The notes under the pieces were generated by a model. That model was given only the letters and a program-made list of their open reading frames with translations. It did no database searches and had not been told where the DNA came from. From contig BAAFSQ010000086.1 in assembly GCA_054661495.1 (NCBI GenBank), forward strand, positions 4,808-36,807: a stretch of DNA of 32,000 bases, in the 5' to 3' direction. This stretch comes from Zygophlyctis sp. KS116 (lineage: Eukaryota; Fungi; Chytridiomycota). Positions 4,011-20,907 of the stretch are shown here, in pieces; the stretch's first letter is position 1, and each line of letters starts with the position of its first letter. A program made the position numbers and the translations under genes.

Positions 4011-4058
4011 CTATTGTGGGGAACTCAAATAAAATTTCTAAATCGTAGAAAGTTAATT
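4011..4058 (-). repeat. 3' flank element D of the Cys-rich gene family
   Basis: Reverse complement AATTAACTTTCTACGATTTAGAAATTTTATTTGAGTTCCCCACAATAG matches 20869-20907 at 37/39. Its right half matches 18914-18940, and its 16-nt core TTAACTTTCTACGATT recurs at 9318-9333. Confidence 0.85.
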
Positions 4059-4064
4059 GTATTG

Positions 4065-4205
4065 TTACTTGCATTGACCTTTATTATTACCTTTATTATT
4101 ACCTTTCCTAGAAGTACTATCTTCTGGAAATTCACATTTATTAGAACTGCATTCGTCTTTTTTTGAACATTTAGCACCTTTTTTGCCCAAACACTTCTTT
4201 TCATC
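4065..4205 (-). pseudogene. 5'-truncated remnant of a Cys-rich secreted protein gene
   Basis: Minus strand reads DEKKCLGKKGAKCSKKDECSSNKCEFPEDSTSRKGNNKGNNKGQCK*. This is the same GxxCx5Cx4C module as the genes at 9726 and 20258, and it is followed by element D. There is no start or signal peptide, and homology stops at the direct repeat at 4206. Confidence 0.8.
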
Positions 4206-4303
4206 TAATCGGACGAGCAAGTCTATATTGTATTCAAGCAAGAATGCAAAGAGTTCCTATCATCTTGGTTCCTCAACTTTGGGATCTTTTATCAGCTAGA
4301 TAG
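4206..4303 (+). repeat. 98-bp perfect direct repeat, left copy
   Basis: TAATCGGACGAGCAAG...ATCAGCTAGATAG is identical to 5299-5396. Confidence 0.97.
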
Positions 4304-4361
4304 ACAAAAATGAAAATCAAAAAATGCATTTAGTTTTATCTCTAATAAACTTATTGCGGAT

Positions 4362-5059
4362 TTATGGATTTATAACCTGAGTCAGATCTGGATATTGCCC
4401 ATTGATGTTTCCACTATTTGATGAGAAATAAAAACTTACCTGGGATAATAATAGCAGACGTTTATTTTTCTATCGGCATTCTTAGCAAAAGCGCATCCAA
4501 CATCAGTGGTACCTGGCCACATCATCTGGGTAAAACGGTTTATTTGATTGAATTGGAAGACGCCAGCAGATGGCTTACTTTTCCATTCGCTAAGATACTG
4601 CTTGTATTTGTCAGCCTGGCCGTAAAACATATCGATCGAGGGGCTGCAGACTAGCTTATTTCGCCATGGATATGTTACTTGAGCAAGATTAGCTCCATAC
4701 TCATAGCTTGCATTAACGCTTAGAGGTTTTGATTTGACAATCAAATGCTCCGCCCATTTTTGAGCCGCCTGTGTCAGGGAAGCGTTCCATTTAAGCATTT
4801 TGAGTTTCTGGCCTGCTTTATTGTCACGATACAAGTTTCGATAATAGTTTTGTGTATCGATGCAATCTGTCTTCCATTCATTGTATGAACCCAGAGAAGT
4901 AAGCTCAGATGCAGGAGTGCCGGGACGGGTAAGAGTCAGAAGCTGGTTCTGCGGTGTTGTTGCAATTGATCGCTTGAGTAGCTGATTTCTAGCTACTGAG
5001 CCTAGGGAGCTTTGAAGCAAAGTAATCATAACAATCAGGAATGCGTTTGTAGTTTTCAT
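4362..5059 (-). CDS. Secreted CAP/SCP/PR-1 family protein; intron 4414-4439
   Basis: Signal peptide, LKWNASLTQAAQKWAEHL, YGANLA and FTQMMWPGTTDVGCA. After a 26-nt intron it ends VCYYYPSGNINGQYP...*. Confidence 0.9.
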
Positions 5060-5298
5060 TTTTTTTAGTAAGAATTAGCGGCCAATAATTCAGACAAATG
5101 TGTGGCTGCCGGACGACGCCGCATGTTTCATGAGCGGAATAGTTCTGGGAATGAAAATTCAGAGATCCGCTTAATCCTTACTAATGCTTTTTAGAGAGAA
5201 GAAACTTACGTATTTGTTTTTCATGTTAATATTGATATAATCGCTGAGACTGATTAGTTTGAATTTATATCATATGACGTTTTGTCCAAAATTAAAAA

Positions 5299-5396
5299 TA
5301 ATCGGACGAGCAAGTCTATATTGTATTCAAGCAAGAATGCAAAGAGTTCCTATCATCTTGGTTCCTCAACTTTGGGATCTTTTATCAGCTAGATAG
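5299..5396 (+). repeat. 98-bp perfect direct repeat, right copy
   Basis: Identical to 4206-4303; the two copies bracket the CAP gene. Confidence 0.97.
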
Positions 5397-5536
5397 GCCT
5401 ACAAATCTCGGTCGCTGATCCTTTCTCTTATCATTTTTAGAAGCTGGATGTGAGAAAACAACAGTCGAAGTATTAACCATTTAATTTTATTGTTTATGAT
5501 GATATAGGAAATAATCCATCTCTGAAGAGTACTTTC

Positions 5537-8500
5537 CTAATCACAATCAGAAACTGTTAATCTAGGAACAACATTCATTGCCATCAGTTCCTGAAATAGC
5601 AGTTTACATGCATATGGGATTTTAACTGTTGATACATTTGCACGCGACTTACAGTATGGGCAGTACTTATGCCATCCTCCAATAAGTCCACATTGAGAGC
5701 AAACATCCAAATTATATTCATCTGAAGAAAATAATAATCGCTCAATCAAAAGTGATGATGCACCATGAGAAATCATGCAATCCCTTTCCATTTCTCCAAT
5801 TCTAAGCCCTCCATCACGACTACGGCCTTCAGTGGGTTGACGAGTTAAAACAGCTCTTGGTCCTCTTGATCTTGCATGCATTTTATCCATAACCATATGT
5901 TTGAGTTTCTGATAATATATTGGGCCAAAAAAAATATAAGCTTCAAGAGGCTCTCCTGTAATCCCAGATGTTACATAATCCTTCATATTAACATTTTTTT
6001 AAATACCTTTCCAGAGTAAGAATAACCATGATCAATTAATATTCTAGACATATCTTCGACTTTACTACCTCCAAAAGCCTATTGATAAATAATTTTAAGT
6101 ATACAGTTCCATATTGAAAATTTCCCGTTAAAACTCCTGCTTTTCCTGCTAAAAGTTCGATCATTTTTCCAACTGTCATTCGAGATGGGAATCCATGAGG
6201 ATTCATAATAACATCTGGAATAACACCAGAATCAGCAAATGGCATATCTTCCTGGCTGACGATTATTCCACATACACCTTTTTGACCATGGCGAGAAGAA
6301 AACTTGTCGCCTAATTCTGGTCTTCTGGTTTGACGAACCATACACTTTACCATTGTTTGATCTTCTTCATTTGTCGTTATGATCACCCTGTCCACTACTG
6401 ATGTGCCTGGGTATTTATACGTTAGAGGGGTTGGCTTAAATGTTGCACTTGCTGTATCTGCAACTGAAGAATCTGTGACCCTTATCGATGTTTCCTGTGG
6501 TGACTGCTTATTGACCAGGACCGACCCGCTAAATATTTTTTCACCCACCCCAACAATTCCATCCGATCCAAGAGCTTCATGCTTACTTATTTTCTGATTA
6601 GTGTTTGGGTCTATACTGGCATCTACTAGACGGTCAAATGTCTGATTTGGATACGACTTAATCATTGTAGAAAATTTGCGCATAACCTGACAGCGTCCAA
6701 ATCCTCGGTCGAGAGCGGCTTTATTAAGTACGAGAGCATCTTCAATATCATAGCCCGAATAACTCATAACCGCAACCGTTGCAGTTTGTCCAGCCGGGAC
6801 TTTATCATAATGAATCAGCTCTATAGTTCGTGATCTAACCATTGGGTTCTGAGAATATACCATCAAGTATAACAGAGTATCAGCCCTGCAAAGTTGATTG
6901 TATGCTATGATTCCAATTGCTTGTTTTCCCATAGCACATTGGTAGGTATTTCTGGGAGATTGATTGTGGTGGGGATAAGGAATTAGACCAGCTACTGCCC
7001 CAAGAACTGTAAAAGGGGCAATCTCTAAATGACTAGTATTTGGATAATCCTCCTCTAATTTAGAGTAATGGATATCTGATTCATATAAAGCTAAATCAGC
7101 ATCTGTTTCCTCATTTGTGTCTAAATATTCAATTTTGCCTTGATTTACAAGGTCTTCAAAGCGAAGCCGTCCATGGATGATATCTCTCAAGTCTTGCTCC
7201 TTTACAAGACTTTCTCCTTTCTCCACTATAATCATCGGTCGACAAATTCGCCCGCCATCACAAGAAATATGTATCGTTCTCTGACTAATCGTACGATATA
7301 TGGAGACTAGAGGTCCCACTCTACCACATCTTCTCAATTTCCGAAATTTTCGAACGAACTCTACTGGTTTCCGATGTACTCCTAGCAAAACACCATTTAA
7401 TAACACGAGATAGGTAGAATCAGTAGAATATAAATCTGCACCAACTACAACATTTATCTCCTCTACTCCTAAAGCAAAGACGAGTTTTCGAACTGGTTCA
7501 TCTTCTGAATCGGTAGTTATATGCGTCATAAGCGCTAAATTTTTAATAAGACCACAAGCTTCTCCTTCCGGAGTGTCTGATGGACACAACATCCCCCACT
7601 GTGATGTTTGCAAACTTCTAGGACCAGATACTTTTCTTGTTTTTTCAAATTGAGAGGAAATTCTGGTTAGCATCCCTAACGCAGAAACATAGCTTAAACG
7701 AGATAAAACTTGTGTGACACCAGCTCTCTCCATTCTAAATCTCTTTACATTCCAATTTCCAGATGATATAGCTCTGAATAATCCATCTGTGATGAAGCGA
7801 GAAGTCTGAGAAACAGCAGCAGCAGCATCGTATTGTGAAGTTCGGTTTGTACGTTTTAATTGAGCATCAACTGCTCTCTTAATAGAAGAAGCCCAAGATT
7901 TAAACAAATCTTCAAACAATAAGGAAAGCAATTGTCCAGCACTAATAATTTGAAAAAATAAAAATTACAGTTCGAGACGTTTGTTTCCAACAAAATCTCT
8001 ATCATCAACTATTCCACCATCTCTTGTAGCTTGTAAAATTCTCCTTACCATTAAAGCAGCATAAACTACTTTAGGACGATAATTGGGCTGTCCTAAATGA
8101 GTTTGAATAGGGATGTGAGCCAATATGGTGGTTGTTAAAAGTTCCTTTGCTTCTTCAGGAAGATTTCTTTTCGTTCCCCATTTTATCGGTCCAGTTGCAG
8201 ACATCTTCACCTTTGATCCAATCCAATCCATTGCTTGCTTCTGAGTTATAATTTCATTCTCTGTAGCATCAACAATAGAGGGCAAGAAAAGTTCCATAAA
8301 TTCTTTATCTTTTCCACAAACCATTTCCATGATTTCTTGATCAGTTTCTATCCCCATTGCTTTGAAAAAAATAACAATAGGAATATCTGAAGAAAATGAA
8401 TTATGTTTTAAATGAACTTTTTGCTGTTTCCCTAGAGTAATTGTAGTTTTTGATTTTTTTTCGTGAGTTGAAGAAGTTACATTGGCTCCAATACATCCTA

Positions 8501-9139
8501 GACGATCAGTTTCAACAATAATTCTATTCTTTGAAAGTTGTTCTTGAATCAAAATAACTTTTTCAGTTCCTCTTATAATAAAATATCCACCTGGATCTAA
8601 TGGACACTCTCCCATATCAACAATATCTTTTGCAGACTTATCCTTGAGTACGCATTTTGAAGATCTTAACATGATTGGCATCCTCCCAATTTCAATATTT
8701 CTCTTAATCACAACTTGTTTTCCTCTTACATACTCAATGTCTACAATGATTGTTCCTCCATATGTTATATCTCTAAGCCTACATTCTTGGGGCGTGAGTT
8801 CGTACGAAATTCCCTTCTGGACATCTTGAGCTTGTGGGCTCTTGACCCTAATATCCAGAAACTTTAGATAGAAATGAGGATCAACATCCGAATCAACTTT
8901 AGAATTTGCCATTAGAATCTTTTTTATATCGGTTTCAATAAAATAATTAAAAGAGTCCAAATGCTGCTTTACCAGCCCCTTGGTTTGCAAAAAAGCAGGA
9001 ACAAGTCTCCATTTATCCTGCATTGATTAAAAAGATTATTTACCTCTGCAGTATTGATCGGATCTGTAATGCTTTTCCCTAGATATCGCAGGTTGTCCGA
9101 TCCAGCAACATCAGCTTCAAAAATTGATGCTCCGCTCAT
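5537..9139 (-). CDS. RPC2: RNA polymerase III second-largest subunit (Rpc2/Ret1/POLR3B); introns 9018-9043, 7942-7968, 6079-6104, 5981-6006
   Basis: [85 protein letters not shown] and a C-terminal zinc ribbon. Four 26-27-nt introns. Confidence 0.96.
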
Positions 9140-9446
9140 TTTTCCTTTAAGCCACAGTCCTCTGCATAACCATCAGTGCCTCAAACGTACGAGGTGTTCA
9201 TACTCTAGGTTTTAGACTTTTCACTACGAATGGCTCTGAACCCTCTTACCGTTTACTCTAAAAATTTGAATGAGCCGTTGTAGACCTAAGCAGACTTTGA
9301 CATGGAAGATCTGGAACTTAACTTTCTACGATTATTAATGGTTGTCCATAACGGAGTTGAGTATCAAGGAGATTTGGAAACTTGGAAATTCAGAGAGGTT
9401 GTAGATTTTCAGATTTCTTAAAACTCAATCTGTCCGATATTTTAAT

Positions 9447-9596
9447 GATTATCTCAATACAAGAATGAACTAGATGGCAATGATAACAATCTTGAAAAAC
9501 TAATTCATTTATTTACTCTTTAAAATATTATCTAGATCTCTACTACAACAGTCCATCTCTCCTTTTACTAATTAAATTGACCCATGTCATCCATAG
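9447..9596 (+). repeat. 5' flank element A of the Cys-rich unit (copy 1)
   Basis: 9447-9547 aligns with 18687-18789, including exact AAAAACTAATTCATTTATTTACTCTTTAAAATATTAT. ACCCATGTCATCCATAG at 9580-9596 equals 18792-18808. Confidence 0.88.
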
Positions 9597-9630
9597 GTGG
9601 GACAGCCGGTGGGACAGCATTTTTGCTCAC

Positions 9631-9687
9631 GTCATCCGGCGGGACAGGAACGGATATAAAAGGAGCTGATTTTGGGTGGGACATCTT
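9631..9687 (+). promoter_or_regulatory. Shared 57-bp promoter module B (GTCATCCGG / GGGACA / TATAAAAGG)
   Basis: 55/57 identical to 20193-20249. It contains TATAAAA and lies directly upstream of a Cys-rich ORF in both places. GGGACA occurs 4 times in 9599-9683. Confidence 0.8.
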
Positions 9688-9725
9688 GTAAAAAAACTAA
9701 AATCTCATTCTTCTAAATCTCGAAA

Positions 9726-10124
9726 ATGAAACTTACTATTTTGACTGTTGGAATTATTGCATTGTTTAATGTAGTTAGTTGTGGTCCGGGATTGGGATTG
9801 GGTTATCCTTGCAAAAAAAATAGCAATCTTATATATAGCTGTAAGAAAGAACTCGAGTGTGTTGATGGCAAATGCAAGGCTAAACTTGGCGAAAAATGTG
9901 AGAAGAATGATGACTGTGTTTCCAAAAACTGTAATCTAGACACAAAAAAGTGTTATCTCCCAAAAGCCAATTCTGTTGGATTGGACGGATATTGTAATAT
10001 GGAATCAGAGTGCAAAACTGACTTCACATGTAAGTCTAACAAATGCAAGAAAATAAAAGGCAAAACATGTGGGAACAATAATGAATGTTCATCCGCGTAT
10101 TGTAAAGCAGGTCGTTGTCTTTAA
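9726..10124 (+). CDS. Small secreted Cys-rich protein, 4 x four-Cys modules, intronless
   Basis: Signal peptide MKLTILTVGIIALFNVVSC, then 16 further Cys in repeats such as GEKCEKNDDCVSKNC and GKTCGNNNECSSAYC. Lys-rich. Confidence 0.88.
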   Translation: MKLTILTVGIIALFNVVSCGPGLGLGYPCKKNSNLIYSCKKELECVDGKCKAKLGEKCEKNDDCVSKNCNLDTKKCYLPKANSVGLDGYCNMESECKTDFTCKSNKCKKIKGKTCGNNNECSSAYCKAGRCL

Positions 10125-10162
10125 ACACATTACTAAAAAAGATTTTCTTTTATTTATTATTT

Positions 10163-10194
10163 ATTGAGCTTCATTTAGTCTCTGGAATTTTTAT
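10163..10194 (+). repeat. 3' flank element C of the Cys-rich unit
   Basis: ATTGAGCTTCATTTAGTCTCTGGAATTTTTAT is identical (32/32) to 18891-18922. Confidence 0.92.
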
Positions 10195-10335
10195 AAAGGA
10201 CTGCCAAACATGTTTAATCAATAAAGTACATGTTGACCAGTGTAATGTTGCATGATTCTAAATATTTATTGTGACTGCTTTATAAAGATTTGGGCTGATC
10301 ATGAAACAGGACCATCTACATCTAATGTTTGAGCC

Positions 10336-10362
10336 TCTGTCCCTCAGAGTCTGAGGGACAGA
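10336..10362. repeat. 27-bp palindrome (13-bp perfect arms, 1-nt spacer)
   Basis: TCTGTCCCTCAGA-G-TCTGAGGGACAGA. Confidence 0.9.
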
Positions 10363-10720
10363 TCAGTTCAGATGAACGTGTTTGATAGCCTAGGTAGAAC
10401 TAAACAAGTAGCTTTGGGAATTCTCATAAATGGAAGTCCTAGGAAATCAATTAATAATTGTTTTTAGTAGTATGATAAATAATAATAAATTTTACTTGAA
10501 GTGTTTCATCTCGTACAAATCTAATCTTACTTTAGGAATAAATAGCCGCCCAAAGATAATACTAAATAAACATTTTCTTCTTTTATTCTACATTTTGGAC
10601 AATCTGTTCACATTAATACATGCTGAGACTTATGAGACTAATCAGTTAAATGTTTTTGAAACAAGATTTATTTTACAACCAACTTTAAAAGCTGCACAAA
10701 TAATCAGTCATTGATCAGGC

Positions 10721-13536
10721 TTAGTTTGTTGGTTGGAAGCTAGAAGATAACATACCAGAGATATTGTTTGCCATTCTAATATTGATTCCCACAAAATTCA
10801 AAAACTGTACTGATACCAGTTTAGTAACCACAGAATGAGTTTGTAAAGAGGCTAAATTCAGAGATTTGGCGTTGAACAGACTTATAATGGGCTCGAAAAA
10901 CATTCCAAAAAGCTCAAACCATCCAATTTGCCAAACTGCCATTCTTGGTGCATCAGAAGGACTAATCCCAAGCCCAGTATCAACTTGTATTTTAACTCCA
11001 AATATAATGGCTGGAATAGTTACCAAGGAAATATCGGTAAATGCACGCTAAAAATTAGATATACCAAACTTACAGGTTTTCCGCTCAAAAAATAGTGATT
11101 GGGATTTAATTGTCCAAGTACACTTCGGACCATTTTTATGACCAATTCAATAACCCAGGAATACCAATTTCCAAAAAACATTGGATCTGGATGATTAAGT
11201 GAATATTTCATTTCTTCTGCGTCAATGTGATCCAGTTGATTAATCGGATATGCAGGGATGGCAGCAATAACTTGAAACAAAGACTGCATTATCTGCGGAT
11301 ATTCAGTAAGTTTTCCTGGGTTATTAACAGATGACATCTTATCGGCCACTCTTTGGTATTTATGATTTCTAAAATCCTCCATTTCTAATGTAATACAGAA
11401 AGCACCATTCATTAACATATATGCCATCAAGTTGGTACATCGTTGCATCCAATCATAGATTCCCAATCGATGATCTTGCAGCTCTTGATTATCCATCGCA
11501 TAGGTACGATTATCATGATTCCAAGTGTGGAGTAGTAACTCTGGGTTAGAAGAGCCGCTGAGAACCTCAACATCAACTGCTGTAAATGGTGCATTCTGAT
11601 TATAGAGTAAGTACTGATAGGTTCCAAGTAGACCACCCAAGAAACAAAGAATGTCCAGAAGCGATAAGTCAGATTTTTGCCTATTAAATAAAATCACTAG
11701 AATTATTACCCAAATTTTTTTGCCCAAAAATCATGTAAAAATGGAATCTTCAGGGGAATAATCATAAACTTCAATGCCATATTCCAATATAATGGAACTA
11801 TTTGCATCAGTGAACCTAATAGATGTCCAGTTACATGTTCAACTCCAAGAAAAGCTGATCGAAGTAGATTCAAAATCTTTGATAGGCCCATATTCGCGAA
11901 TGAAGTATTTGGTCCAAATTTAAGTTTTGGCATCGAAAAAGATTGAAATTCATCCATGTCAAATGCCTTTCCTATATCATGTCCTGCGTCCTGACAGACC
12001 TTTATAATACTTTCAACCAGAGACTTTGCCTCTTGATCCATTACTAAATTCGGTAAACTATTCACGATCCGATCTTGTAACATAAATGTATTTGCATCTG
12101 CTTCCATACTTTCCATATCTTTATAAGTCTTCACAAACTGTGCTTGCGCAGAACCTTTTGCCAATTTAGAAGAACTAGCAAAGCTCAAATCTTTCACGCC
12201 AAGTTTTTTCATTGCCTTTTTAAAGCTGCGGTCAGAATAGCGAGTAAAATTCTTCAAACTTTCCATATATATATCCTTTGCTAGATCTATCCCAAAAAGT
12301 GACAATGGCGCTAATTTTCTATAAAATAGACTAAGAAACGCAGTAGAGTGTGAAATATCATCCCAACGAATCTTAGAAACCAAGGTCTCTATCAGCCTAC
12401 GAATAGCAATCCCAGATTTATGAAGGATTGTTACAACTGTTTGCCAGGCATTTTCTACAGTACTGATCAAATGATGTCTCCAGCCTTTCTTCTCATCACG
12501 AGCAAATAATACCATGTGCTTTTGGTTTGTCCGAGGATGTGAAAGAATGTGGTCATCCGATTCATGAACTACAAAAAAATCATCATTAGCCTCAAATCCA
12601 GAAATATTCAATGCATTAGCCAAACCAACTTGAGATTCACTGTCTTCCAAATCAGGATTTCCAACAAACGAACGCTTAAACAAATCTTTTTGGAGTGGTA
12701 AATCATCAACAATATAGGTCGTCAACTTGTTTTTGACAGAATCATACTTGAGTCCACTATGTTCGGACAGAGGTTTATCTTGCACCCCAGACCCACCTTC
12801 CACCCCAAACTTGATTCTAGCATTTGGTAATGGGGCATGAGATCCAGAGAAAATTAAAGATAAAGAAGAGACCATAGAATGAGCAAAAGCATCATTTAAT
12901 GACGGTTCAATAGCCATCAACTGTGAAGGTGTAACATGAGCCAACTTGTGTAAAATAGGAGAATCAATATGCGCAACGACCCTAACCATGAATTCTGGAA
13001 CCTTACCATTGATCTTTGGACATTGCAGCGCTCTGAATGAAGAGCGGAGGAAACAAATGATCAAGAGACTCTACTCCATCTAGCGGAATTGAAAAAGAAA
13101 CTCTCCCAAGCAAATTTGTCACAAAACTCTGAGATTCATCAGATGATAAACTGCAGTCATCAAAACCACCATTTCCCTGCTCAACAATGCAGGGTAAGGA
13201 AGATTGCGACTTGATTCTAATCAAATGTCCGGGAATCGGAGCTCTTTCATCCATCCCAGAATCAACAACCGAAACAATCACATGCAATGCCTTGGATAGC
13301 GACCATGGATGCTGTCCCTCCCATCCAAGTCCTTCTGATAACTCTGATTGGACTTGGATGATGGGAAGGGTATTAGGAGATTGAAGAAAGTCTGAATCTT
13401 TTGGCATGGCCAAGTATTCAAATGGTTTCCAATCTCCTTCAGATACTAATGCATCCGCTGAACCAAATAATATACTCAAGATCGTAGACATTCCTAGAAT
13501 AACCGAAAATGTCTCTGGTACATGCAAGTCTAGCAT
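10721..13536 (-). CDS. Large (~900 aa) uncharacterised, probably secreted protein, paralog A; introns 12982-13006, 11681-11709, 11048-11073
   Basis: Four ORF-track pieces join in frame through 25/29/26-nt GT-AG introns. The N-terminus is hydrophobic (start could be a downstream Met). Colinear with paralog B. Confidence 0.85.
12323..13362. repeat. ~1.04-kb near-identical block, copy 1
   Basis: Matches 15291-16330 (offset 2968). Translations are identical apart from one E/D change; the only mismatch I found is 13333 vs 16301. Confidence 0.93.
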
Positions 13537-13687
13537 TTTAATTACTTAGGGCTATGGTAGGTTTTGATTGTCGATTACAAGGAAAATTTATTCACTTTGC
13601 AACGACGAATTTTCGCTTTTTTCATGCGTGTTTGATCATGCTTTTTATGAAAAAAGGTCAAATTTTAGGTCAAGGTGTATTTTAGGT

Positions 13688-16480
13688 TTAAACATCCTCT
13701 GGCTGGAAACTCGATGAGAGCATTCCTGAAATATTATAAGCGATACGGATATTTATGGCCGCAAAGTTCATGGCTTGAATGGCCAAATGTTTGGCAACGA
13801 GAACATATGTACGAGATCTTTCACTTGACATTGTAACATATGGTAAAAGAGCCTCAAAATAATATCCTGCGATTTCAAACCATCCCATCCATAAAACAAC
13901 CTGGCGAGGATAGTCATTTTTTGCAATCTGTTTTCCCATATCATGCTGAATTCTTACACTCCAGAATGTAGTTGGCGCTAAAAGTTAAAAAAAATAGAAA
14001 ATACATACCTGCAACAAGAACTAAATCAGTTATAATTCTCTAATTTAATTAATATAAATGAAAATACCAATGGTCCTCCGACAAATGGATGATTGCTATC
14101 TACGGTTCCGACAATAGTTCTGACAGCTTTTGTAAATAATTCAATGACCCATGAATACCAGAGTTGCAGATATCTTGAATCTGGATTGTCAAGTGAATTT
14201 TGCAAAATAGTTGCATCGGTTGTTTCAAGTTGATTAATGGGATATGCTCCGATTGGGCCAACCATTTGAAATAATGAAATTAACATTTGTGGTCCATTTG
14301 TTAATTCCCCAGGATTCTCCATAGACGATATTTTTAATCCCTTTGCCAATCTTTGGTCATTACGACGATCCTCTACTAACAATGCTAAATCATATGCTCC
14401 ATTCATTAATGACCAAACCATCATATTGAGACATCTTTGGATCCAATCATAAATTCCAAGTCGGTGTTCCCGCAGTTCCGGCTGATCCATTGCGTAAGTT
14501 CTAGGATCTTTATTCCAAGTATATAAGAAAAGTTCAGGATTAGTTACACTATTTAATACTTCAATATCAGTTGCATCAAATGGCGCCTTCTTGTTAAATA
14601 TGCGATACTGATGTGCGCCATAAGAACCACCCAGTAAACAGAGAATATCAATTAATGATAATGAAGAACGATTACTTATTTTGAGAATAAAAAAATATTA
14701 CCCAAATCTCTTTGACCAAAAATCATACAAAAATGGAATCTTCAATGGTAGATTCATAAAAGATAGAGCTAAATTCCAGTAAAAAGGAACAAATTGCATA
14801 AGCGCCGCAAATAGATTACCTCCAACATGTTCAGCTGTAAGTAAAAAATTTCTTAAATACTGTAGAGCTTTAGCCAAATTAAGTTTCATGAGATGGTTTA
14901 GACTGGGAAGTTTCACTGAATTTGTATTAATCTTATTCATTTCATGATAATCGAATGAATTCTTTACTGAATCACCGGCTTCACGGCATACTTTGAACAA
15001 TCTTTCTAAAACAGTCTTATTACTATAATCCATGGAGATTTGTTTAATATTATTCACAAATCTATCATGAATCATCGCTGTATTAGCGTCCAGAGTCGGA
15101 TCATTCGTAATATTAGAAAATTGAGATTCTGCCTTTAATGACTGCTGGAAGTTGATATTGTTTACTCCCATTTTTCTTATCGCCTTTTGTATCAAATCAT
15201 CGGTATTATTTGCAATATTTTTCAAAGTCTCTCCGAAAATATCCCGAGCCATATCAAATCCTTTTAATGATAATGTACCCAACTTCCTCAAAAATAGACT
15301 AAGAAACGCAGTAGAGTGTGAAATATCATCCCAACGAATCTTAGAAACCAAGGTCTCTATCAGCCTACGAATAGCAATCCCAGATTTATGAAGGATTGTT
15401 ACAACTGTTTGCCAGGCATTTTCTACAGTACTGATCAAATGATGTCTCCAGCCTTTCTTCTCATCACGAGCAAATAATACCATGTGCTTTTGGTTTGTCC
15501 GAGGATGTGAAAGAATGTGGTCATCCGATTCATGAACTACAAAAAAATCATCATTAGCCTCAAATCCAGAAATATTCAATGCATTAGCCAAACCAACTTG
15601 AGATTCACTGTCTTCCAAATCAGGATTTCCAACAAACGAACGCTTAAACAAATCTTTTTGGAGTGGTAAATCATCAACAATATAGGTCGTCAACTTGTTT
15701 TTGACAGAATCATACTTGAGTCCACTATGTTCGGACAGAGGTTTATCTTGCACCCCAGACCCACCTTCCACCCCAAACTTGATTCTAGCATTTGGTAATG
15801 GGGCATGAGATCCAGAGAAAATTAAAGATAAAGAAGAGACCATAGAATGAGCAAAAGCATCATTTAATGACGGTTCAATAGCCATCAACTGTGAAGGTGT
15901 AACATGAGCCAACTTGTGTAAAATAGGAGAATCAATATGCGCAACGACCCTAACCATGAATTCTGGAACCTTACCATTGATCTTTGGACATTGCAGCGCT
16001 CTGAATGAAGAGCGGAGGAAACAAATGATCAAGAGACTCTACTCCATCTAGCGGAATTGAAAAAGAAACTCTCCCAAGCAAATTTGTCACAAAACTCTGA
16101 GATTCATCAGATGATAAACTGCAGTCATCAAAACCACCATTTCCCTGCTCAACAATGCAGGGTAAGGAAGATTGCGACTTGATTCTAATCAAATGTCCGG
16201 GAATCGGAGCTCTTTCATCCATCCCAGAATCAACAACCGAAACAATCACATGCAATGCCTTGGATAGCGACCATGGATGCTGTCCCTCCCATCCAAGTCC
16301 GTCTGATAACTCTGATTGGACTTGGATGATTGGAATATTTTGCAATTTCCTAGTAATGAATTCCGGATCATTTTCCACTGAAAGAAATTCAAATGGTTTC
16401 CAATCTTTCTCATTGGCATTAACAGAATCTGCATTGATCATGCAGTAGAAAATGATTAAAATAGGGAATGCATTCAACAT
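13688..16480 (-). CDS. Large uncharacterised, probably secreted protein, paralog B; introns 15950-15974, 14675-14701, 14040-14067, 13978-14008
   Basis: Signal-like MLNAFPILIIFYCMINADS. The spliced product aligns with paralog A through to the C-terminal NISGMLSSSFQP. It contains a 31-nt micro-exon (14009-14039). Confidence 0.85.
15291..16330. repeat. ~1.04-kb near-identical block, copy 2
   Basis: See 12323-13362. Confidence 0.93.
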
Positions 16481-16539
16481 ATTAGTTGACCAGAAGAACA
16501 AAAAAAACGAGAAAATTTTTCTTTCAAATTTTTATAGTT

Positions 16540-17631
16540 TTAGGGCTGATTAACAGTCCCACAATTGACTAGACACCCAGAGAATACTTTATTCAAAACT
16601 ATAGCTAGTCTATATCCACCTAAAATTACTATATGAAATAAAAATTACCTTTAGCAATCTGAAAATCAATAAATTCCTTTGAGTTTTCATAATAAGTTTT
16701 TCCAAAATCCTGATTTGGATCCTTTTCAAATCTATTCCAAACAATCGAACATCCAAATGAATTTTCCTCGTTCACCCAATCTACAATTGTTTGAAGATGA
16801 CCTAGAGAAGTTCTAGCCTGAAAGCTTAAATTCTCTACCCATGTTTCCTTTAGATCAGAATATATTCCATCTTCAAGTAATTCAGTCAAATACTGTGTAT
16901 AAACCGTGTCCGATCGATTAAAATCCAATTTTATATGTTTCTCAATCATTAGAGTATCCCATAGAGTATGAAAATTTCTAGAATGAGTATTATCAAATTG
17001 AATCTTGTCTTCATTCCCTCCCCGATCTAAATTTTATAAAAATCATGAATTATACCTCTTGAACAGAGATGAAGTGGTTGAACTAAATCTCCTATAAAAT
17101 GTACTAAAAATTTCAAAGCTATTGATTGTGTAGTATCATTATATACAAGAGTAGAATCAGTCAATTTACGAGAATTCCAAGCACCATGCTTGTGATTCTG
17201 ATGCTTGGCAAGCTTGGTAAATCTCAGCTGATCAGTGTAATTTGTAATTGCACCGACTAAACACTGTCCTTTTTGGATTAATTATGAGTAATATTACCGT
17301 TCGGACAATCTCTTTCATCTACATATCCGCAACTATAAGGAGGATTATCTTGAGAGTCAACATAATGATATGGGCCTGACCATCCAAAATTATGAGAAAT
17401 TCTTACTTGATCAGCCCAACTCTAGAATTAATTTTAATAAAATACCGCAATTTCAGAAATCTTTTGTTGACCTAAAATCTCAATGATTGCATTACTAGTT
17501 TCATGATTTATAAAAGACTCTGCTACTCTTGCAATCGCTGCATGGCCTAGATTTATAAGTTTAAAAGTACCTGTATGACCCCAAGATTGTACAATACTTG
17601 TAAAGCAAATTAAGAATGCGATAATCAGCAT
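16540..17631 (-). CDS. Secreted S1/P1 nuclease; introns 17547-17570, 17422-17445, 17269-17297, 17027-17055, 16620-16648
   Basis: Signal peptide, then WGHTGH, ASWADQVR, HYVD, CLVGAITNYT, ALKFLVHFIGDLVQPLH, RGGN, FHTLWD and IAKGGYRLA. Alternative in-frame starts at 17652 and 17673. Confidence 0.93.
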
Positions 17632-17691
17632 TTGAACACGTTTAATCAGCATTTGAACACGTTTAATCAGCATTTGAACACGTTTAATCAG
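17622..17691. repeat. 21-bp tandem repeat x3.3 spanning the nuclease start codon
   Basis: Unit TAATCAGCATTTGAACACGTT at 17622, 17643 and 17664, plus a partial TAATCAG. Confidence 0.95.
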
Positions 17692-17775
17692 ACGCTTGAA
17701 AATCAAACTAGTTGTAGGACTGTTCATAGTTCCAGATTTAGCTCAAAATTTAAAGTGCAGGATAGAATAACTACT

Positions 17776-17805
17776 AATCATGAAAATCATGAAAATCATG
17801 AAAAT
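17776..17805. repeat. 9-bp tandem repeat (AATCATGAA)x3
   Basis: Seen directly in the intergenic gap. Confidence 0.85.
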
Positions 17806-17821
17806 AAAGATAATGTATTTT

Positions 17822-18397
17822 TTATAGAAATCTACTAAGAGACTCCTGAGACTGACAAGATTCAATTGTTAGGGCAGATTTGGGTTTTGATAATTCTTTC
17901 AAAGATTTCTTGATTGATAAATCAGTAAAAATAGAGTCATATTCAGGAGAAGGGGGTAAAATATAATAAGGAACAGGGGTTTGTGTTCGTGAAGATTCTA
18001 AAGAAACTCGTTCTTGCATTGAGCCTAATCCAGAAGCTGATTCTAAAAAAATTGATGGTATTCCTTTTAAGTGACTCTGATGTCTTCTCCTCCTCCTAGC
18101 AACAAAGCCTAAAAGTAGACCTAAAATCAAAAGACTAGAAACGAGTAAAAGAGTAAAATGCAAAAAATTGAATCCCATACTTTGTCTTGTAATGATGGCA
18201 GTCTCTTGAGATTGTTTGGATATAATAGGGCCTATATTCCCTGAATGTTCTTTAGAAAGATTAATTCTTGATAATTGTCTTCCATTATTCCTGTAAATGT
18301 TCCTGTCAGATATATGTTGTTTGATTGGAGAATGATTGATTTCTGTAAGGGTTGCACCAGAGACTGTACATAATAAAGAAAGTTTAGCTAATTTCAT
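17822..18397 (-). CDS. Hypothetical single-pass type I membrane protein (191 aa)
   Basis: Signal-like N-terminus, a hydrophobic helix followed by the basic stop-transfer RRRRR, and a Ser/Pro-rich tail. Confidence 0.65.
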   Translation of the reverse strand: MKLAKLSLLCTVSGATLTEINHSPIKQHISDRNIYRNNGRQLSRINLSKEHSGNIGPIISKQSQETAIITRQSMGFNFLHFTLLLVSSLLILGLLLGFVARRRRRHQSHLKGIPSIFLESASGLGSMQERVSLESSRTQTPVPYYILPPSPEYDSIFTDLSIKKSLKELSKPKSALTIESCQSQESLSRFL

Positions 18398-18686
18398 TTT
18401 AAGCTTTTGCTTTGTGGAAAATTTTCGTGGAAGAAATGAAAATTTTAGATAAAGTTGACAGCCGAGATCCCGATTCTCCTTACCGGGTAAAAGGTGTCTA
18501 AAGTCAGAACTCTAACCTAGATTCAAACCTAGGGCAGAATCAAAGTTTCGGACTTGAGTTTTAATGAGATTTCCACTCGGCAATTTTAATTTATGTACCA
18601 AGTTTTAATTGAGATCATTTCCACAAGTATGGGTTATTCCATAGCACAACATTGAACGAATGCAGCATTATTTTTGAAAGTAACAA

Positions 18687-18940
18687 GATTATCTCAATAC
18701 AAGGATTATCTAGAAGGCTATGATAATATTCTTTAAAAAAACTAATTCATTTATTTACTCTTTAAAATATTATTTATCTCTCTACTACATAACCCATGTC
18801 ATCCATAGTAAATTCGTCACTTTGCTTACTTCATCCTGAGGTGAAACGTTACTTTGCTTATGTCATTCCGGACAAATAAAAAAGCTACTGATTGAGCTTC
18901 ATTTAGTCTCTGGAATTTTTATTGAGTTCCCCGCAATAGA
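18687..18940 (+). repeat. ORF-less composite of cassette flanks A + degenerate B + C + D
   Basis: A at 18687-18808. TTTGCTTACTTCATCC and TTTGCTTATGTCATTCCGG (18821-18871) resemble TTTGCTCACGTCATCCGG at 9622. C at 18891-18922 and the right half of D at 18914-18940. Confidence 0.85.
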
Positions 18941-18987
18941 TTGTCCAATCAAAATAGGCAACGATCAATTACATCAACTAGAAATTA

Positions 18988-20159
18988 ATGATTAAAGTTT
19001 TACTCTTTTAACAATTTACCAATCCAAATCTAGTACTTTCCAGATTAAATTCAATCGACCTGAAGGAATTTTAATCTGTCATTTAGCAAAAAATTATCTA
19101 AATGGTGTTGCTTCATATCCTGTATCAGATTTAACCCATCAAAATGCACCTGTTCATAGAGCTTATTGCTATGAATCTCAACCAGCTGATAGAAAATCCA
19201 TGTCTTTAAAAAGTGATTCACTGCAGAAGAAAAAGAGCACCCAAAAATTATTAGAAAATTCTAATACATACAAAGATACAGCCTTGAATAATTAACTTTT
19301 AGATTCTCTAAGCAAGGAAAGTGAATCTAGTCTAAGCCGTGAAAGAGGAATGAAACTATCCAGGAAAATCTTTCGAATTCTTAATCTCATTAGAGCCATA
19401 GCTGTTGCAATATACGCATTTGTTCCAACTTCAAAACAGTTAGAAAACAATGACGTGATTGCTTTAGGGGCAAAGAATTTGCTCATCACTTCACTTGTTT
19501 TTGCTGCATTTGACGTTGCTGTAGCTTTTATCAGACTCTTCCCCCAATATTTCTGGTATTTCTGGGATGTCAAAAATTGGGATCCTGTAAATTAAAGTTA
19601 CTAATTCCTAGTTTGCAAAGACATATACAGTTCGGGCTATCATTGAAATCATGATCTAATTATTGACATTATTCCAGTTCTACTTAATATGATTGTTCGT
19701 ATTTACATGTACAGAATGTCCGAAATCCTCGCAAATCCCTCAATTCAAGATAGTATCTACAACATTTCTATTTCTATAAGCCAAGTGAATGATATTTTCA
19801 AATATCAGAATTTAATAATTCTCATGTGCTTTGTTGCTACTTTAGTGTATACCATTGCCTTTCATGCAGCATCAGTAATGTTTTACTTATCTTGGGACAA
19901 AAAAGCAACAATTCTAGGATTTTTAGTCTTTTTAAAGAGTTTACTTCTTTTGTTTGATATTTTAACGAATGGAATGCTTTTATACAAAGTACTTGTATTT
20001 AAAGGAATTGATCTTTTTGATTTACATGGACTTTTAGGATTTACAATTTCTATTGTTGCGCCGTCTCCTATAATAACCTTGGTGACAAATGGTATCATTT
20101 CATTTATACTTTTACTTGTAGGCCTTGTAAATATTCTTCTTCACTACTTCATTTGCTAA
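18988..20159 (+). pseudogene. Probable pseudogene of a multi-pass membrane protein
   Basis: ATG at 18988 gives MIKVLLF, then needs a frameshift (~19006) to enter a ~95-codon frame. An in-frame TAA at 19293 lies inside an intron-like 27-nt segment (19276-19302) with an AT instead of GT donor. A canonical intron sits at 19587-19611, a second frameshift near 19646, and several hydrophobic helices follow. Confidence 0.55.
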
Positions 20160-20192
20160 TAATGCCAATAGAAAAATACCGTCATCCAGCAT

Positions 20193-20249
20193 GTCATCCG
20201 GCGGGACAGCAACGGATATAAAAGGAGCTGATTATGGGTGGGACATCTT
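20193..20249 (+). promoter_or_regulatory. Shared 57-bp promoter module B (copy 2)
   Basis: 55/57 identical to 9631-9687; preceded by an extra GTCATCC at 20181. Confidence 0.8.
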
Positions 20250-20257
20250 CTAAAAAA

Positions 20258-20845
20258 ATGAAATCATCTCTCTTCTGTCTTTTGGTTGCTTTACTCTCCA
20301 TGGCTGGGAATGTTCAAGCTGTATGTACAGCGTGTGAAACTAATCAGTATTGTACAGGGAGTAAATGTAAGAACAAAAAAAATGGAGGGGGTAGTTGCGC
20401 TAATAAAAAAGAGTGCTTCTCCGACAATTGTATTAATGGCCAATGCGGATGTACCAAAACATGCATTTCAGGCCTAACTTGTATTAACGGAAAATGTGAA
20501 GAGAAAAGAAAATCCGGCGGCTATTGCGATAATGACAATATGTGCAAATCTGGCAAATGTTTATCGTCGACAAAGAAATGTGTTGACTGTAAGGTACAAG
20601 CCGACTGCCCAAAAGACAAAGCTTGTATTGATTGGGAATGTGTTCGATTCGACAAACAAGAAATCGGCTCCTATTGCCAAAAAAATTTTTGGTGCAAATC
20701 TAACAATTGTTCCGACGACGATAGATGTATTGGTACAAAAAAAAATGGGGCAACATGCGATAGAAACTCTGACTGCGCTTCAAACCATTGCCAGCATTAT
20801 GGAAATTCGGACGGAGTTAATGTACCGAGTAGATGCGTGCCTTAG
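20258..20845 (+). CDS. Secreted Cys-rich protein, 7 x four-Cys modules, intronless
   Basis: Signal peptide MKSSLFCLLVALLSMAGNVQA and 28 Cys in the mature part (e.g. GGSCANKKECFSDNC, GATCDRNSDCASNHC). The upstream ATG at 20234 lies inside the promoter module and is TTG in the other copy. Confidence 0.88.
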   Translation: MKSSLFCLLVALLSMAGNVQAVCTACETNQYCTGSKCKNKKNGGGSCANKKECFSDNCINGQCGCTKTCISGLTCINGKCEEKRKSGGYCDNDNMCKSGKCLSSTKKCVDCKVQADCPKDKACIDWECVRFDKQEIGSYCQKNFWCKSNNCSDDDRCIGTKKNGATCDRNSDCASNHCQHYGNSDGVNVPSRCVP

Positions 20846-20868
20846 GGTTAAAATGCGAAAAAAGACAA

Positions 20869-20907
20869 AATTAACTTTCTACGATTTATATATTTTATTT
20901 GAGTTCC
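20869..20907 (+). repeat. 3' flank element D (copy after Cys-rich gene 2)
   Basis: 37/39 identical to the reverse complement of 4020-4058. Confidence 0.88.

Follow-up and report, generated by a model that had tools for sequence, protein, structure and literature searches.

A dispersed family of secreted-protein genes in Zygophlyctis sp. KS116 with near-identical promoters and signal-peptide segments and diversified mature parts

A 32,000-nucleotide stretch of the genome of Zygophlyctis sp. KS116, a fungus of the Chytridiomycota, carries four loci (units 1 to 4; u1 and u2 stand for units 1 and 2) that share short non-coding blocks, named A and B upstream and C and D downstream, around or beside open reading frames (ORFs) for Cys-rich secreted proteins. 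This stretch (the window) is contig C86:4808-36807 of an assembly of 12.7 Mb, 1175 contigs and ~35% GC; C with a number denotes a contig of this assembly, and L025 and L043 are metagenome contigs. A reading made from the sequence alone had proposed a shuffling or mobilisation system that disperses such ORFs under a portable promoter. Our analysis favours, with a probability of about 0.6, the view that the units, some intact and some wrecked, belong to a small family of dispersed secreted-protein genes under common regulation, and are not the cargo of a transposon. The family is defined by a compact promoter found at ~15 loci on at least 14 contigs, which is followed by a signal-peptide segment that is near-identical in nucleotides, a fast-changing mature part and a 3′ untranslated region (3′UTR).

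The similarities between the four units were borne out in detail. Block B is identical at 55 of 57 positions between units 1 and 2 (9631-9687 and 20193-20249, by repeat search and direct count) and lies within a wider block (9628-9714 and 20190-20276) of 87% identity. Block C is identical at 32/32 positions between units 1 and 3 (10163-10194 and 18891-18922), block D at 37/39 between unit 2 and the reverse complement of unit 4 (20869-20907 and 4020-4058), and block A is shared by units 1 and 3 at 85-94% identity (9447-9547 and 18687-18789). The BLAST E-values of these pairs, 1e-13 to 1e-31, show that the matches are not due to chance. Unit 3 (18687-18940) has stop codons in all six frames and thus no ORF, and unit 4 retains the end of a Cys-module ORF with D behind it but lacks a start codon and signal peptide. 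As had been claimed, similarity is greater in the flanks than in the ORFs: the DNA of units 1 and 2 can be aligned in B only, and B is 95% identical between genes whose proteins, distant paralogs of the same module type, are 32% identical (E = 9e-8).

Two details of the sequence-only reading required revision. Blocks C and D had been treated as separate modules; they align with each other and have a common core, TTATT(T)GAGYTYC, at an equal distance from the stop codon, and are therefore two versions of one 3′UTR. D-like 3′UTRs also occur in the C242 and C430 copies, and in unit 3 the 3′UTR core recurs after block C. Furthermore, the ATG of the unit 2 signal peptide is at 20258, and an in-frame ATG at 20234 falls inside the promoter block. 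This upstream ATG results from a T-to-A change at 20234-20236, 24 nucleotides (nt) before the signal-peptide ATG; transcription probably begins downstream of it, which would leave it unused. A stray D core at 9318-9333 was also confirmed (16/16). It sits in the copied tail of a leucine-rich repeat (LRR) gene, and the C124 copy of that tail differs right there, with 5 substitutions and a 3-nt indel in 20 nt; the match may reflect conversion over a very short patch, or coincidence.

When blocks A to D were run by BLAST against the whole assembly, the pattern extended well beyond the window. Block A occurs in at least 11 places, B in 6-7, a variant promoter (B′) in several more and C in 4, and D is recognisable by BLAST in the window only; the unit 1 protein family occurs in 6 places. 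Scans of the whole assembly with two degenerate promoter patterns returned the known loci, C36 and two chance matches, with 0-1 matches for reversed-pattern controls. The two chance matches, on C192 and C301, lie inside or beside housekeeping genes and were rejected.

An alignment of all copies gives a common gene plan. It begins with an optional 91-nt segment, A0, found only in C774, C861 and C1048, followed by the optional upstream extension A, which consists of A1 (~100 nt, AT-rich) and A2 (~35 nt). Then come a first CATGTCATCC box, one of three blocks (GTGGGACAG-type, TAAATACGTCAC-type or GTGAAACGTCAC-type), a second CACGTCATCC box, GGCGGGACAG, TATAAAAGG and either GGGTGGGACATCTT or CTGCCATTGTTT, followed by an A run, a leader of 10-45 nt and the ATG. 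The core promoter, B or B′, is ~70 nt long and has a TATA box flanked by repeats of the ACGTCATCC and GGYGGGACAG boxes. GGGACAG is found 11 times in the window against 1.4 expected, with four such boxes in unit 1 alone. The boxes are probably binding sites for a bZIP/ATF-type factor (ACGTCA) and for a GGGACAG-binding factor. In unit 2 the whole promoter fits within the 98 nt from the stop codon of the upstream gene (20159) to the ATG (20258). The description of the promoter as portable is apt to this extent, that it is compact, in effect portable, and precedes non-homologous cargo.

Each gene that can be read downstream of this promoter encodes a signal peptide at its start, and several types occur. 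The MKLT type precedes Cys-module proteins in u1, C124, C861, C242, C430 and the metagenome copy L025, and the MKS type precedes those of u2 and C36. The MIS type is found with a different Cys protein (C1), a 33-residue ORF (C24) and an LRR protein with one-repeat exons (C200/C4), and its DNA is confined to these four promoter-bearing loci, C1, C24, C200 and C4. A fourth type, MIF, begins a 176-residue non-Cys protein on C294. The mature parts are mostly tandem Cys modules resembling DUF7107 and EB, to which they have weak Pfam matches. They share with these domains a build of tandem short disulfide modules, but most members score below threshold: against a DUF7107 gathering score of 24.6 bits, C861 reaches 25.7, whereas C36 (23.0), unit 2 (18.1) and unit 1 (15.6) stay below it. 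The AlphaFold model of unit 1 has a pLDDT (predicted local distance difference test) of 75; a Foldseek search of this model against the PDB gave nothing at E <= 0.001 (best E = 0.05), and the model has only weak knottin and Dickkopf/colipase-like resemblances. ESM Atlas features provide a lead only, to Dickkopf_N and DUF7107-type clusters. An exact-sequence database look-up with the unit 1 protein found nothing, and a homology search returned a single relative, from an ENA freshwater metagenome.

A comparison of flank identity with synonymous divergence in the ORFs shows that the reversed conservation extends to synonymous sites, which differ little in the signal peptide and much in the mature protein. 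In the MKLT family, the signal-peptide coding segment is identical at 51-54 of 54 nt, with a proportion of synonymous differences (pS) of 0-0.08, whereas the mature parts of the same pairs have pS of 0.18-0.69 (Fisher p = 7e-6 for u1-C861, the best pair, and 4e-4 for C124-C861). Among the closest pairs, nonsynonymous divergence (dN) and synonymous divergence (dS) are 0.20 and 0.13 for u1-C124 and 0.23 and 0.16 for u1-L025; dN/dS is ~1.4-1.5 in the three closest pairs, values that come from 37-97 codons with no site model and with one partner a pseudogene. The upstream non-coding DNA of u1 and C124 differs by ~10-12%, similar to dS, and the pattern in this close pair is mainly one of fast amino-acid change. 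In distant pairs, the synonymous sites have diverged far more than the flanks, which calls for nucleotide-level constraint, homogenisation, or both.

Constraint is supported by a metagenome contig. L043 (the Joint Genome Institute (JGI) metagenome contig Ga0315906_10331168) represents a more distant relative, its remaining segments being only 69-90% identical to the genome, and has 37 identical nt around the TATA box ahead of another gene for a signal peptide and Cys protein; because it is also kept in this relative, the promoter core is probably under functional constraint. L043 itself has a ~100-nt terminal direct repeat (1-100 and 1243-1340), indicating a ~1.24-kb unit that is tandemly repeated or was assembled as a circle, and its positions 602-711 match a repeat found on at least 5 contigs of the genome.

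Purifying selection by itself could be taken to explain the whole pattern. The genes would then be an ordinary paralog family in which each nucleotide of the promoter, leader, signal segment and 3′ signal matters, with no conversion or shuffling. The dense packing of the promoter with repeated boxes and the retention of its core in the distant relative fit such a view, as do the ragged boundaries and low copy number of the shared blocks, which the sequence-only reading had itself named as signs of ordinary duplication under selection. We nevertheless consider it unlikely. The promoter spacers are conserved as well as the boxes, the signal-peptide synonymous sites are frozen where those of the mature part are near saturation, and the far-upstream A1, ~100 nt long, is 88-98% identical between genes with saturated mature parts. 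Moreover, one and the same promoter and signal peptide also stand before non-homologous cargo, and the promoter sub-blocks and signal-peptide types occur in all four combinations. This holds for the box-1 variants (GTGGGACAG-type and TAAATACGTCAC-type) with MKLT and MIS (u1, C124, C1/C4 and C200) and again for the TATA-proximal variants B and B′ with MKLT and MIS (u1, C861, C1 and C24). The presence of all combinations implies recombination or gene conversion and speaks for some homogenisation of the non-coding parts. Within the window, two tandem paralogs on the minus strand (12300-13435 and 15268-16406) share a 1142-nt block that is 96.5% identical while the adjoining parts are 65% identical; we read this block as a gene-conversion tract, and conversion as active nearby.

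Recombination of this kind invites comparison with programmed antigen switching, of the sort known from variant surface glycoproteins (VSG) or the major surface glycoproteins (MSG) of Pneumocystis, in which the promoter-less Cys fragments (unit 4, C507, C134 and C18) would serve as silent donors, copied by segmental conversion into expression sites that have a promoter. Conserved 5′ and 3′ blocks do bracket a variable cargo, several promoter-less fragments retain the 3′ block, and L025 has the appearance of a mosaic with parts akin to C861, C124 and unit 1: its ATR gene is 99% identical to that of C774, yet the 5′ end of its cassette resembles C861 and the 3′ end unit 1. However, at least seven loci have a complete promoter of their own, unlike one or a few expression sites with many silent donors, and the promoter-less fragments are few (~5), some having stop codons (C18) or being very short. 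L025 is broken and may be chimeric, and there is no evidence of somatic or high-rate switching. We regard programmed switching as hardly probable at all. A related possibility, only slightly less improbable, is that recombination takes hold at the promoter and signal-peptide block and at the 3′ block, so that ectopic gene conversion from promoter-less donors would continually re-assort and replace the mature parts; if true, this would be a germline cassette-diversification system for secreted binders or effectors in an early-diverging fungus.

How the copies came to be dispersed can be traced from their endpoints. The homology of unit 1 with C124 begins at 9292, inside the end of an LRR-type ORF that is complete in C124, and stops at 10333, and unit 1 is therefore a copied segment of ~1.04 kb (9292-10333) that includes 155 nt of the LRR gene tail of the donor's neighbour. 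In the C774 copy, which lies downstream of the ATR gene, A0 starts at what in C861 and C1048 is the stop codon of a different upstream gene. Copies that carry fragments of the donor's neighbouring genes point to segmental duplication. A processed retrocopy was rejected, because the copied DNA reaches 70-250 nt upstream of the TATA box and neither C nor D is followed by a poly(A) tract. We infer from the compared sequences that the family spread by segmental DNA duplication, and not by transposition or retroposition.

The sequence-only reading had favoured a DNA-level system, possibly a non-autonomous mobile element. A miniature inverted-repeat transposable element (MITE), a Helitron or a cargo-carrying element that moves the promoter or the whole cassette, and so disperses effector genes, would be compatible with copies on at least 14 contigs, many of them at contig ends as repeats often are, with the existence of full, empty and decapitated units, and with a LINE (long interspersed nuclear element) fragment in one copy. 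What such an element should leave behind was absent: repeat and hairpin searches found no inverted repeat pairing the ends of units 1, 2 or 3, and the compared copies have neither target-site duplications (TSDs) nor identical sharp termini, nor a common 5′ or 3′ end. The 5′ endpoints are ragged: homology with C124 reaches back to 9292, most copies match from 9447 onwards, and C774, C861 and C1048 extend the match by another 91 nt upstream, so that the shared region stops variously and takes in unrelated pieces of neighbouring genes. Helitron ends (5′ TC and 3′ CTRR, with a subterminal hairpin inside the element) were likewise not found, the only hairpin (10336-10362) being outside the shared unit, which ends at 10333, and the 5′ end being inside a gene tail. 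No transposase is associated with any family copy examined, the conserved block extends into the coding region, and simple internal deletions account for the empty and decapitated units. With ~15 copies, donor-neighbour gene fragments within them, ragged 5′ ends and neither terminal inverted repeats (TIRs) nor TSDs, we consider a mobile element very unlikely. What stands of the original shuffling claim is the reticulate history of the flanks, which implies recombination or gene conversion; the non-autonomous mobile element is not supported, and a new kind of mobile element is not revealed by these data.

Many copies are wrecks, resulting from deletion, LINE insertion or frameshift. Unit 3 has lost its ORF, with the promoter fused to the 3′UTR at a junction whose two sides have only a few nucleotides in common, and unit 4 has lost its 5′ part. 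In C507, which is probably continuous with C774, A1 is fused to the middle of an ORF, and in C134 and C18 promoter remnants are fused to mid-ORF fragments, with stop codons in C18. C430 has GTG for ATG and a frameshift, C4 an 8-nt deletion within the signal peptide, C242 a frameshifted last module and L025 a premature stop. In C1048, a 5′-truncated LINE reverse-transcriptase fragment directly follows the TATA box. This fragment, at ~300-790 on the minus strand, is of the non-LTR (non-long-terminal-repeat) type and is in sense orientation relative to the family promoter.

In the explanation we prefer, that of a dispersed and co-regulated gene family, DNA-level segmental duplication of ~1-kb pieces, along with bits of the donor's neighbours, would spread the genes. 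The copies would then undergo birth and death, with diversification of the mature regions, and many would die through deletion between the promoter and the ORF or 3′UTR, LINE insertion or frameshift. The flanks and the signal-peptide segment would stay near-identical for two reasons, functional constraint and re-homogenisation or re-assortment. Non-allelic gene conversion or recombination would re-assort the flanks, and may also have put the promoter and signal peptide before unrelated cargo. The two box types, bound by bZIP/ATF-type and GGGACAG-binding factors, would switch the gene set on together.

Several points weigh against this explanation. In the leader and signal-peptide segment, selection at the nucleotide level may suffice, with no need of conversion. 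The synonymous divergence of the mature parts may be overestimated, since an alignment of repeated Cys modules can pair modules that are not orthologous. The recombinant-looking L025 could be a metagenome assembly chimera, and we do not count it as proof of recombination. C124, C200, C774, C507, C861 and C1048 are on contigs of 1-2 kb or at contig ends, and some may be haplotypes and not paralogs; such placement is expected where repeats break a short-read assembly. RNA support for the family is a single metatranscriptome contig from an estuary, 169 nt long, which covers part of the unit 1 ORF (9902-10069, one difference) and leaves the flanks uncovered, a hint that this ORF is transcribed. 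The window stretch is present in many freshwater, lake and estuary metagenome runs. Three DNA runs match the window without exception across its unique flanks (9000-9360 and 10304-10500) and thus provide no independent strain comparison. In these runs the blocks are present as many short variant contigs, corresponding to the assembly paralogs and at least one further copy; since the unique flanks are identical to the window, the variants come from paralogs, and summed read depths at the blocks are not copy numbers.

The features of the window are listed below.

Table. Positions of family units and adjoining features, numbered from the first nucleotide of the window
Feature	Position	Strand	Basis or detail
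LRR-type gene tail co-copied with unit 1 from a C124-like donor locus; holds the stray D core	9292-9446	+	C124 homology from 9292, 88% over 217 nt
Upstream promoter extension A: A1 9447-9547; A2 and first CATGTCATCC box 9548-9595	9447-9595	+	at least 11 genome copies; alignment
Unit 1 core promoter (block B of the sequence-only reading)	9596-9697	+	two GGTGGGACAGC boxes 9596-9618, CGTCATCC 9630-9637, GGCGGGACAG 9638-9647
Unit 1 core promoter, remaining parts		+	TATAAAAGG 9655-9663, GGGTGGGACATCTT 9673-9686, then A run
Unit 1 gene: 132 residues, signal peptide MKLT..., four Cys modules	9726-10124	+	
Unit 1 3′UTR with block C (10158-10194) and 139 nt of co-copied flank	10125-10333	+	94% to L025:5311-5486; homology stops at 10333
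Perfect 13-nt palindrome CTGTCCC...GGGACAG, 1-nt spacer, right behind the duplicated unit 1 segment	10336-10362	.	
Unit 3 wreck: A1, B′ promoter variant with decayed TATA, C 3′UTR, second 3′ core copy; ORF deleted	18687-18940	+	
Unit 2 promoter, B without A: CGTCATCC, CATGTCATCC, GGCGGGACAG, TATAAAAGG (20217-20225), GGGTGGGACATCTT	20180-20257	+	
Unit 2 gene: 195 residues, signal peptide MKSS..., seven Cys modules; paralog of C36 gene	20258-20845	+	
Unit 2 3′UTR, block D	20846-20907	+	
Unit 4: Cys-module ORF tail 4065-4205, D-type 3′UTR 4020-4064; without start codon, signal peptide or promoter	4020-4205	-	
CAP/PR-1 gene 4436-5059, one 3′ intron, between perfect 98-nt direct repeats 4206-4303 and 5299-5396	4206-5396	-	Pfam CAP E = 8.5e-15

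The palindrome begins 3 nt past the duplicated unit 1 segment and could be a break-prone site at which the copy was inserted, or a binding site. The other genes of the window include an intron-containing gene resembling that for the second-largest subunit of RNA polymerase III, as well as the CAP/PR-1 gene, whose region abuts the truncated end of unit 4; a search of the assembly found no second copy of this gene or of its 98-nt repeat. An Rfam search of the whole window gave no match.

The effectors and promoters of this lineage are little known. ACGTCATCC and GGYGGGACAG boxes followed by a TATA box and a signal peptide form a marker that can pick out secreted proteins, probably regulated as a set, in this chytrid-like organism, which is widespread in fresh water. 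A promoter of <100 nt that is apparently self-sufficient is also a candidate tool for chytrid expression constructs. Furthermore, the family is an independent case of conserved flanks around a diversifying mature protein, in which the contributions of constraint and gene conversion can be measured.

A literature search found no paper describing such a family in chytrids. Oomycete Crinklers and conotoxin precursors combine a conserved N-terminal secretion or targeting module with diverse or hypervariable C-terminal parts, and have been proposed to recombine at the border between the two. Unlike in these protein-level cases, the conserved unit here is mainly non-coding (promoter and leader) and includes only the signal peptide of the protein. 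The mimp elements of Fusarium oxysporum are true MITEs with inverted repeats and are not themselves promoters. They offer a looser analogy, in that secreted effector genes have a short DNA element in common upstream, whereas the shared block here is without TIRs or TSDs, contains the TATA box and extends into the signal-peptide coding segment. The presence of mimp MITEs in effector promoters and their use to find candidate effectors have been described (Schmidt et al., 2013, PMC3599309).

The closest parallel is with the small secreted salivary gland protein (SSGP) families of the Hessian fly, in which the promoter, the 5′ and 3′ UTRs and the signal-peptide coding segment are highly conserved and the mature coding part is diversified, a pattern explained there by positive selection and concerted homogenisation (Chen et al., 2010, PMC2955719). 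The family described here has the same reversed conservation. The SSGP-1 genes form tandem clusters and have a conserved intron (PMC2955719), whereas the chytrid copies are dispersed over many contigs, intronless and often wrecked, and their promoter and signal peptide also stand before non-homologous cargo.

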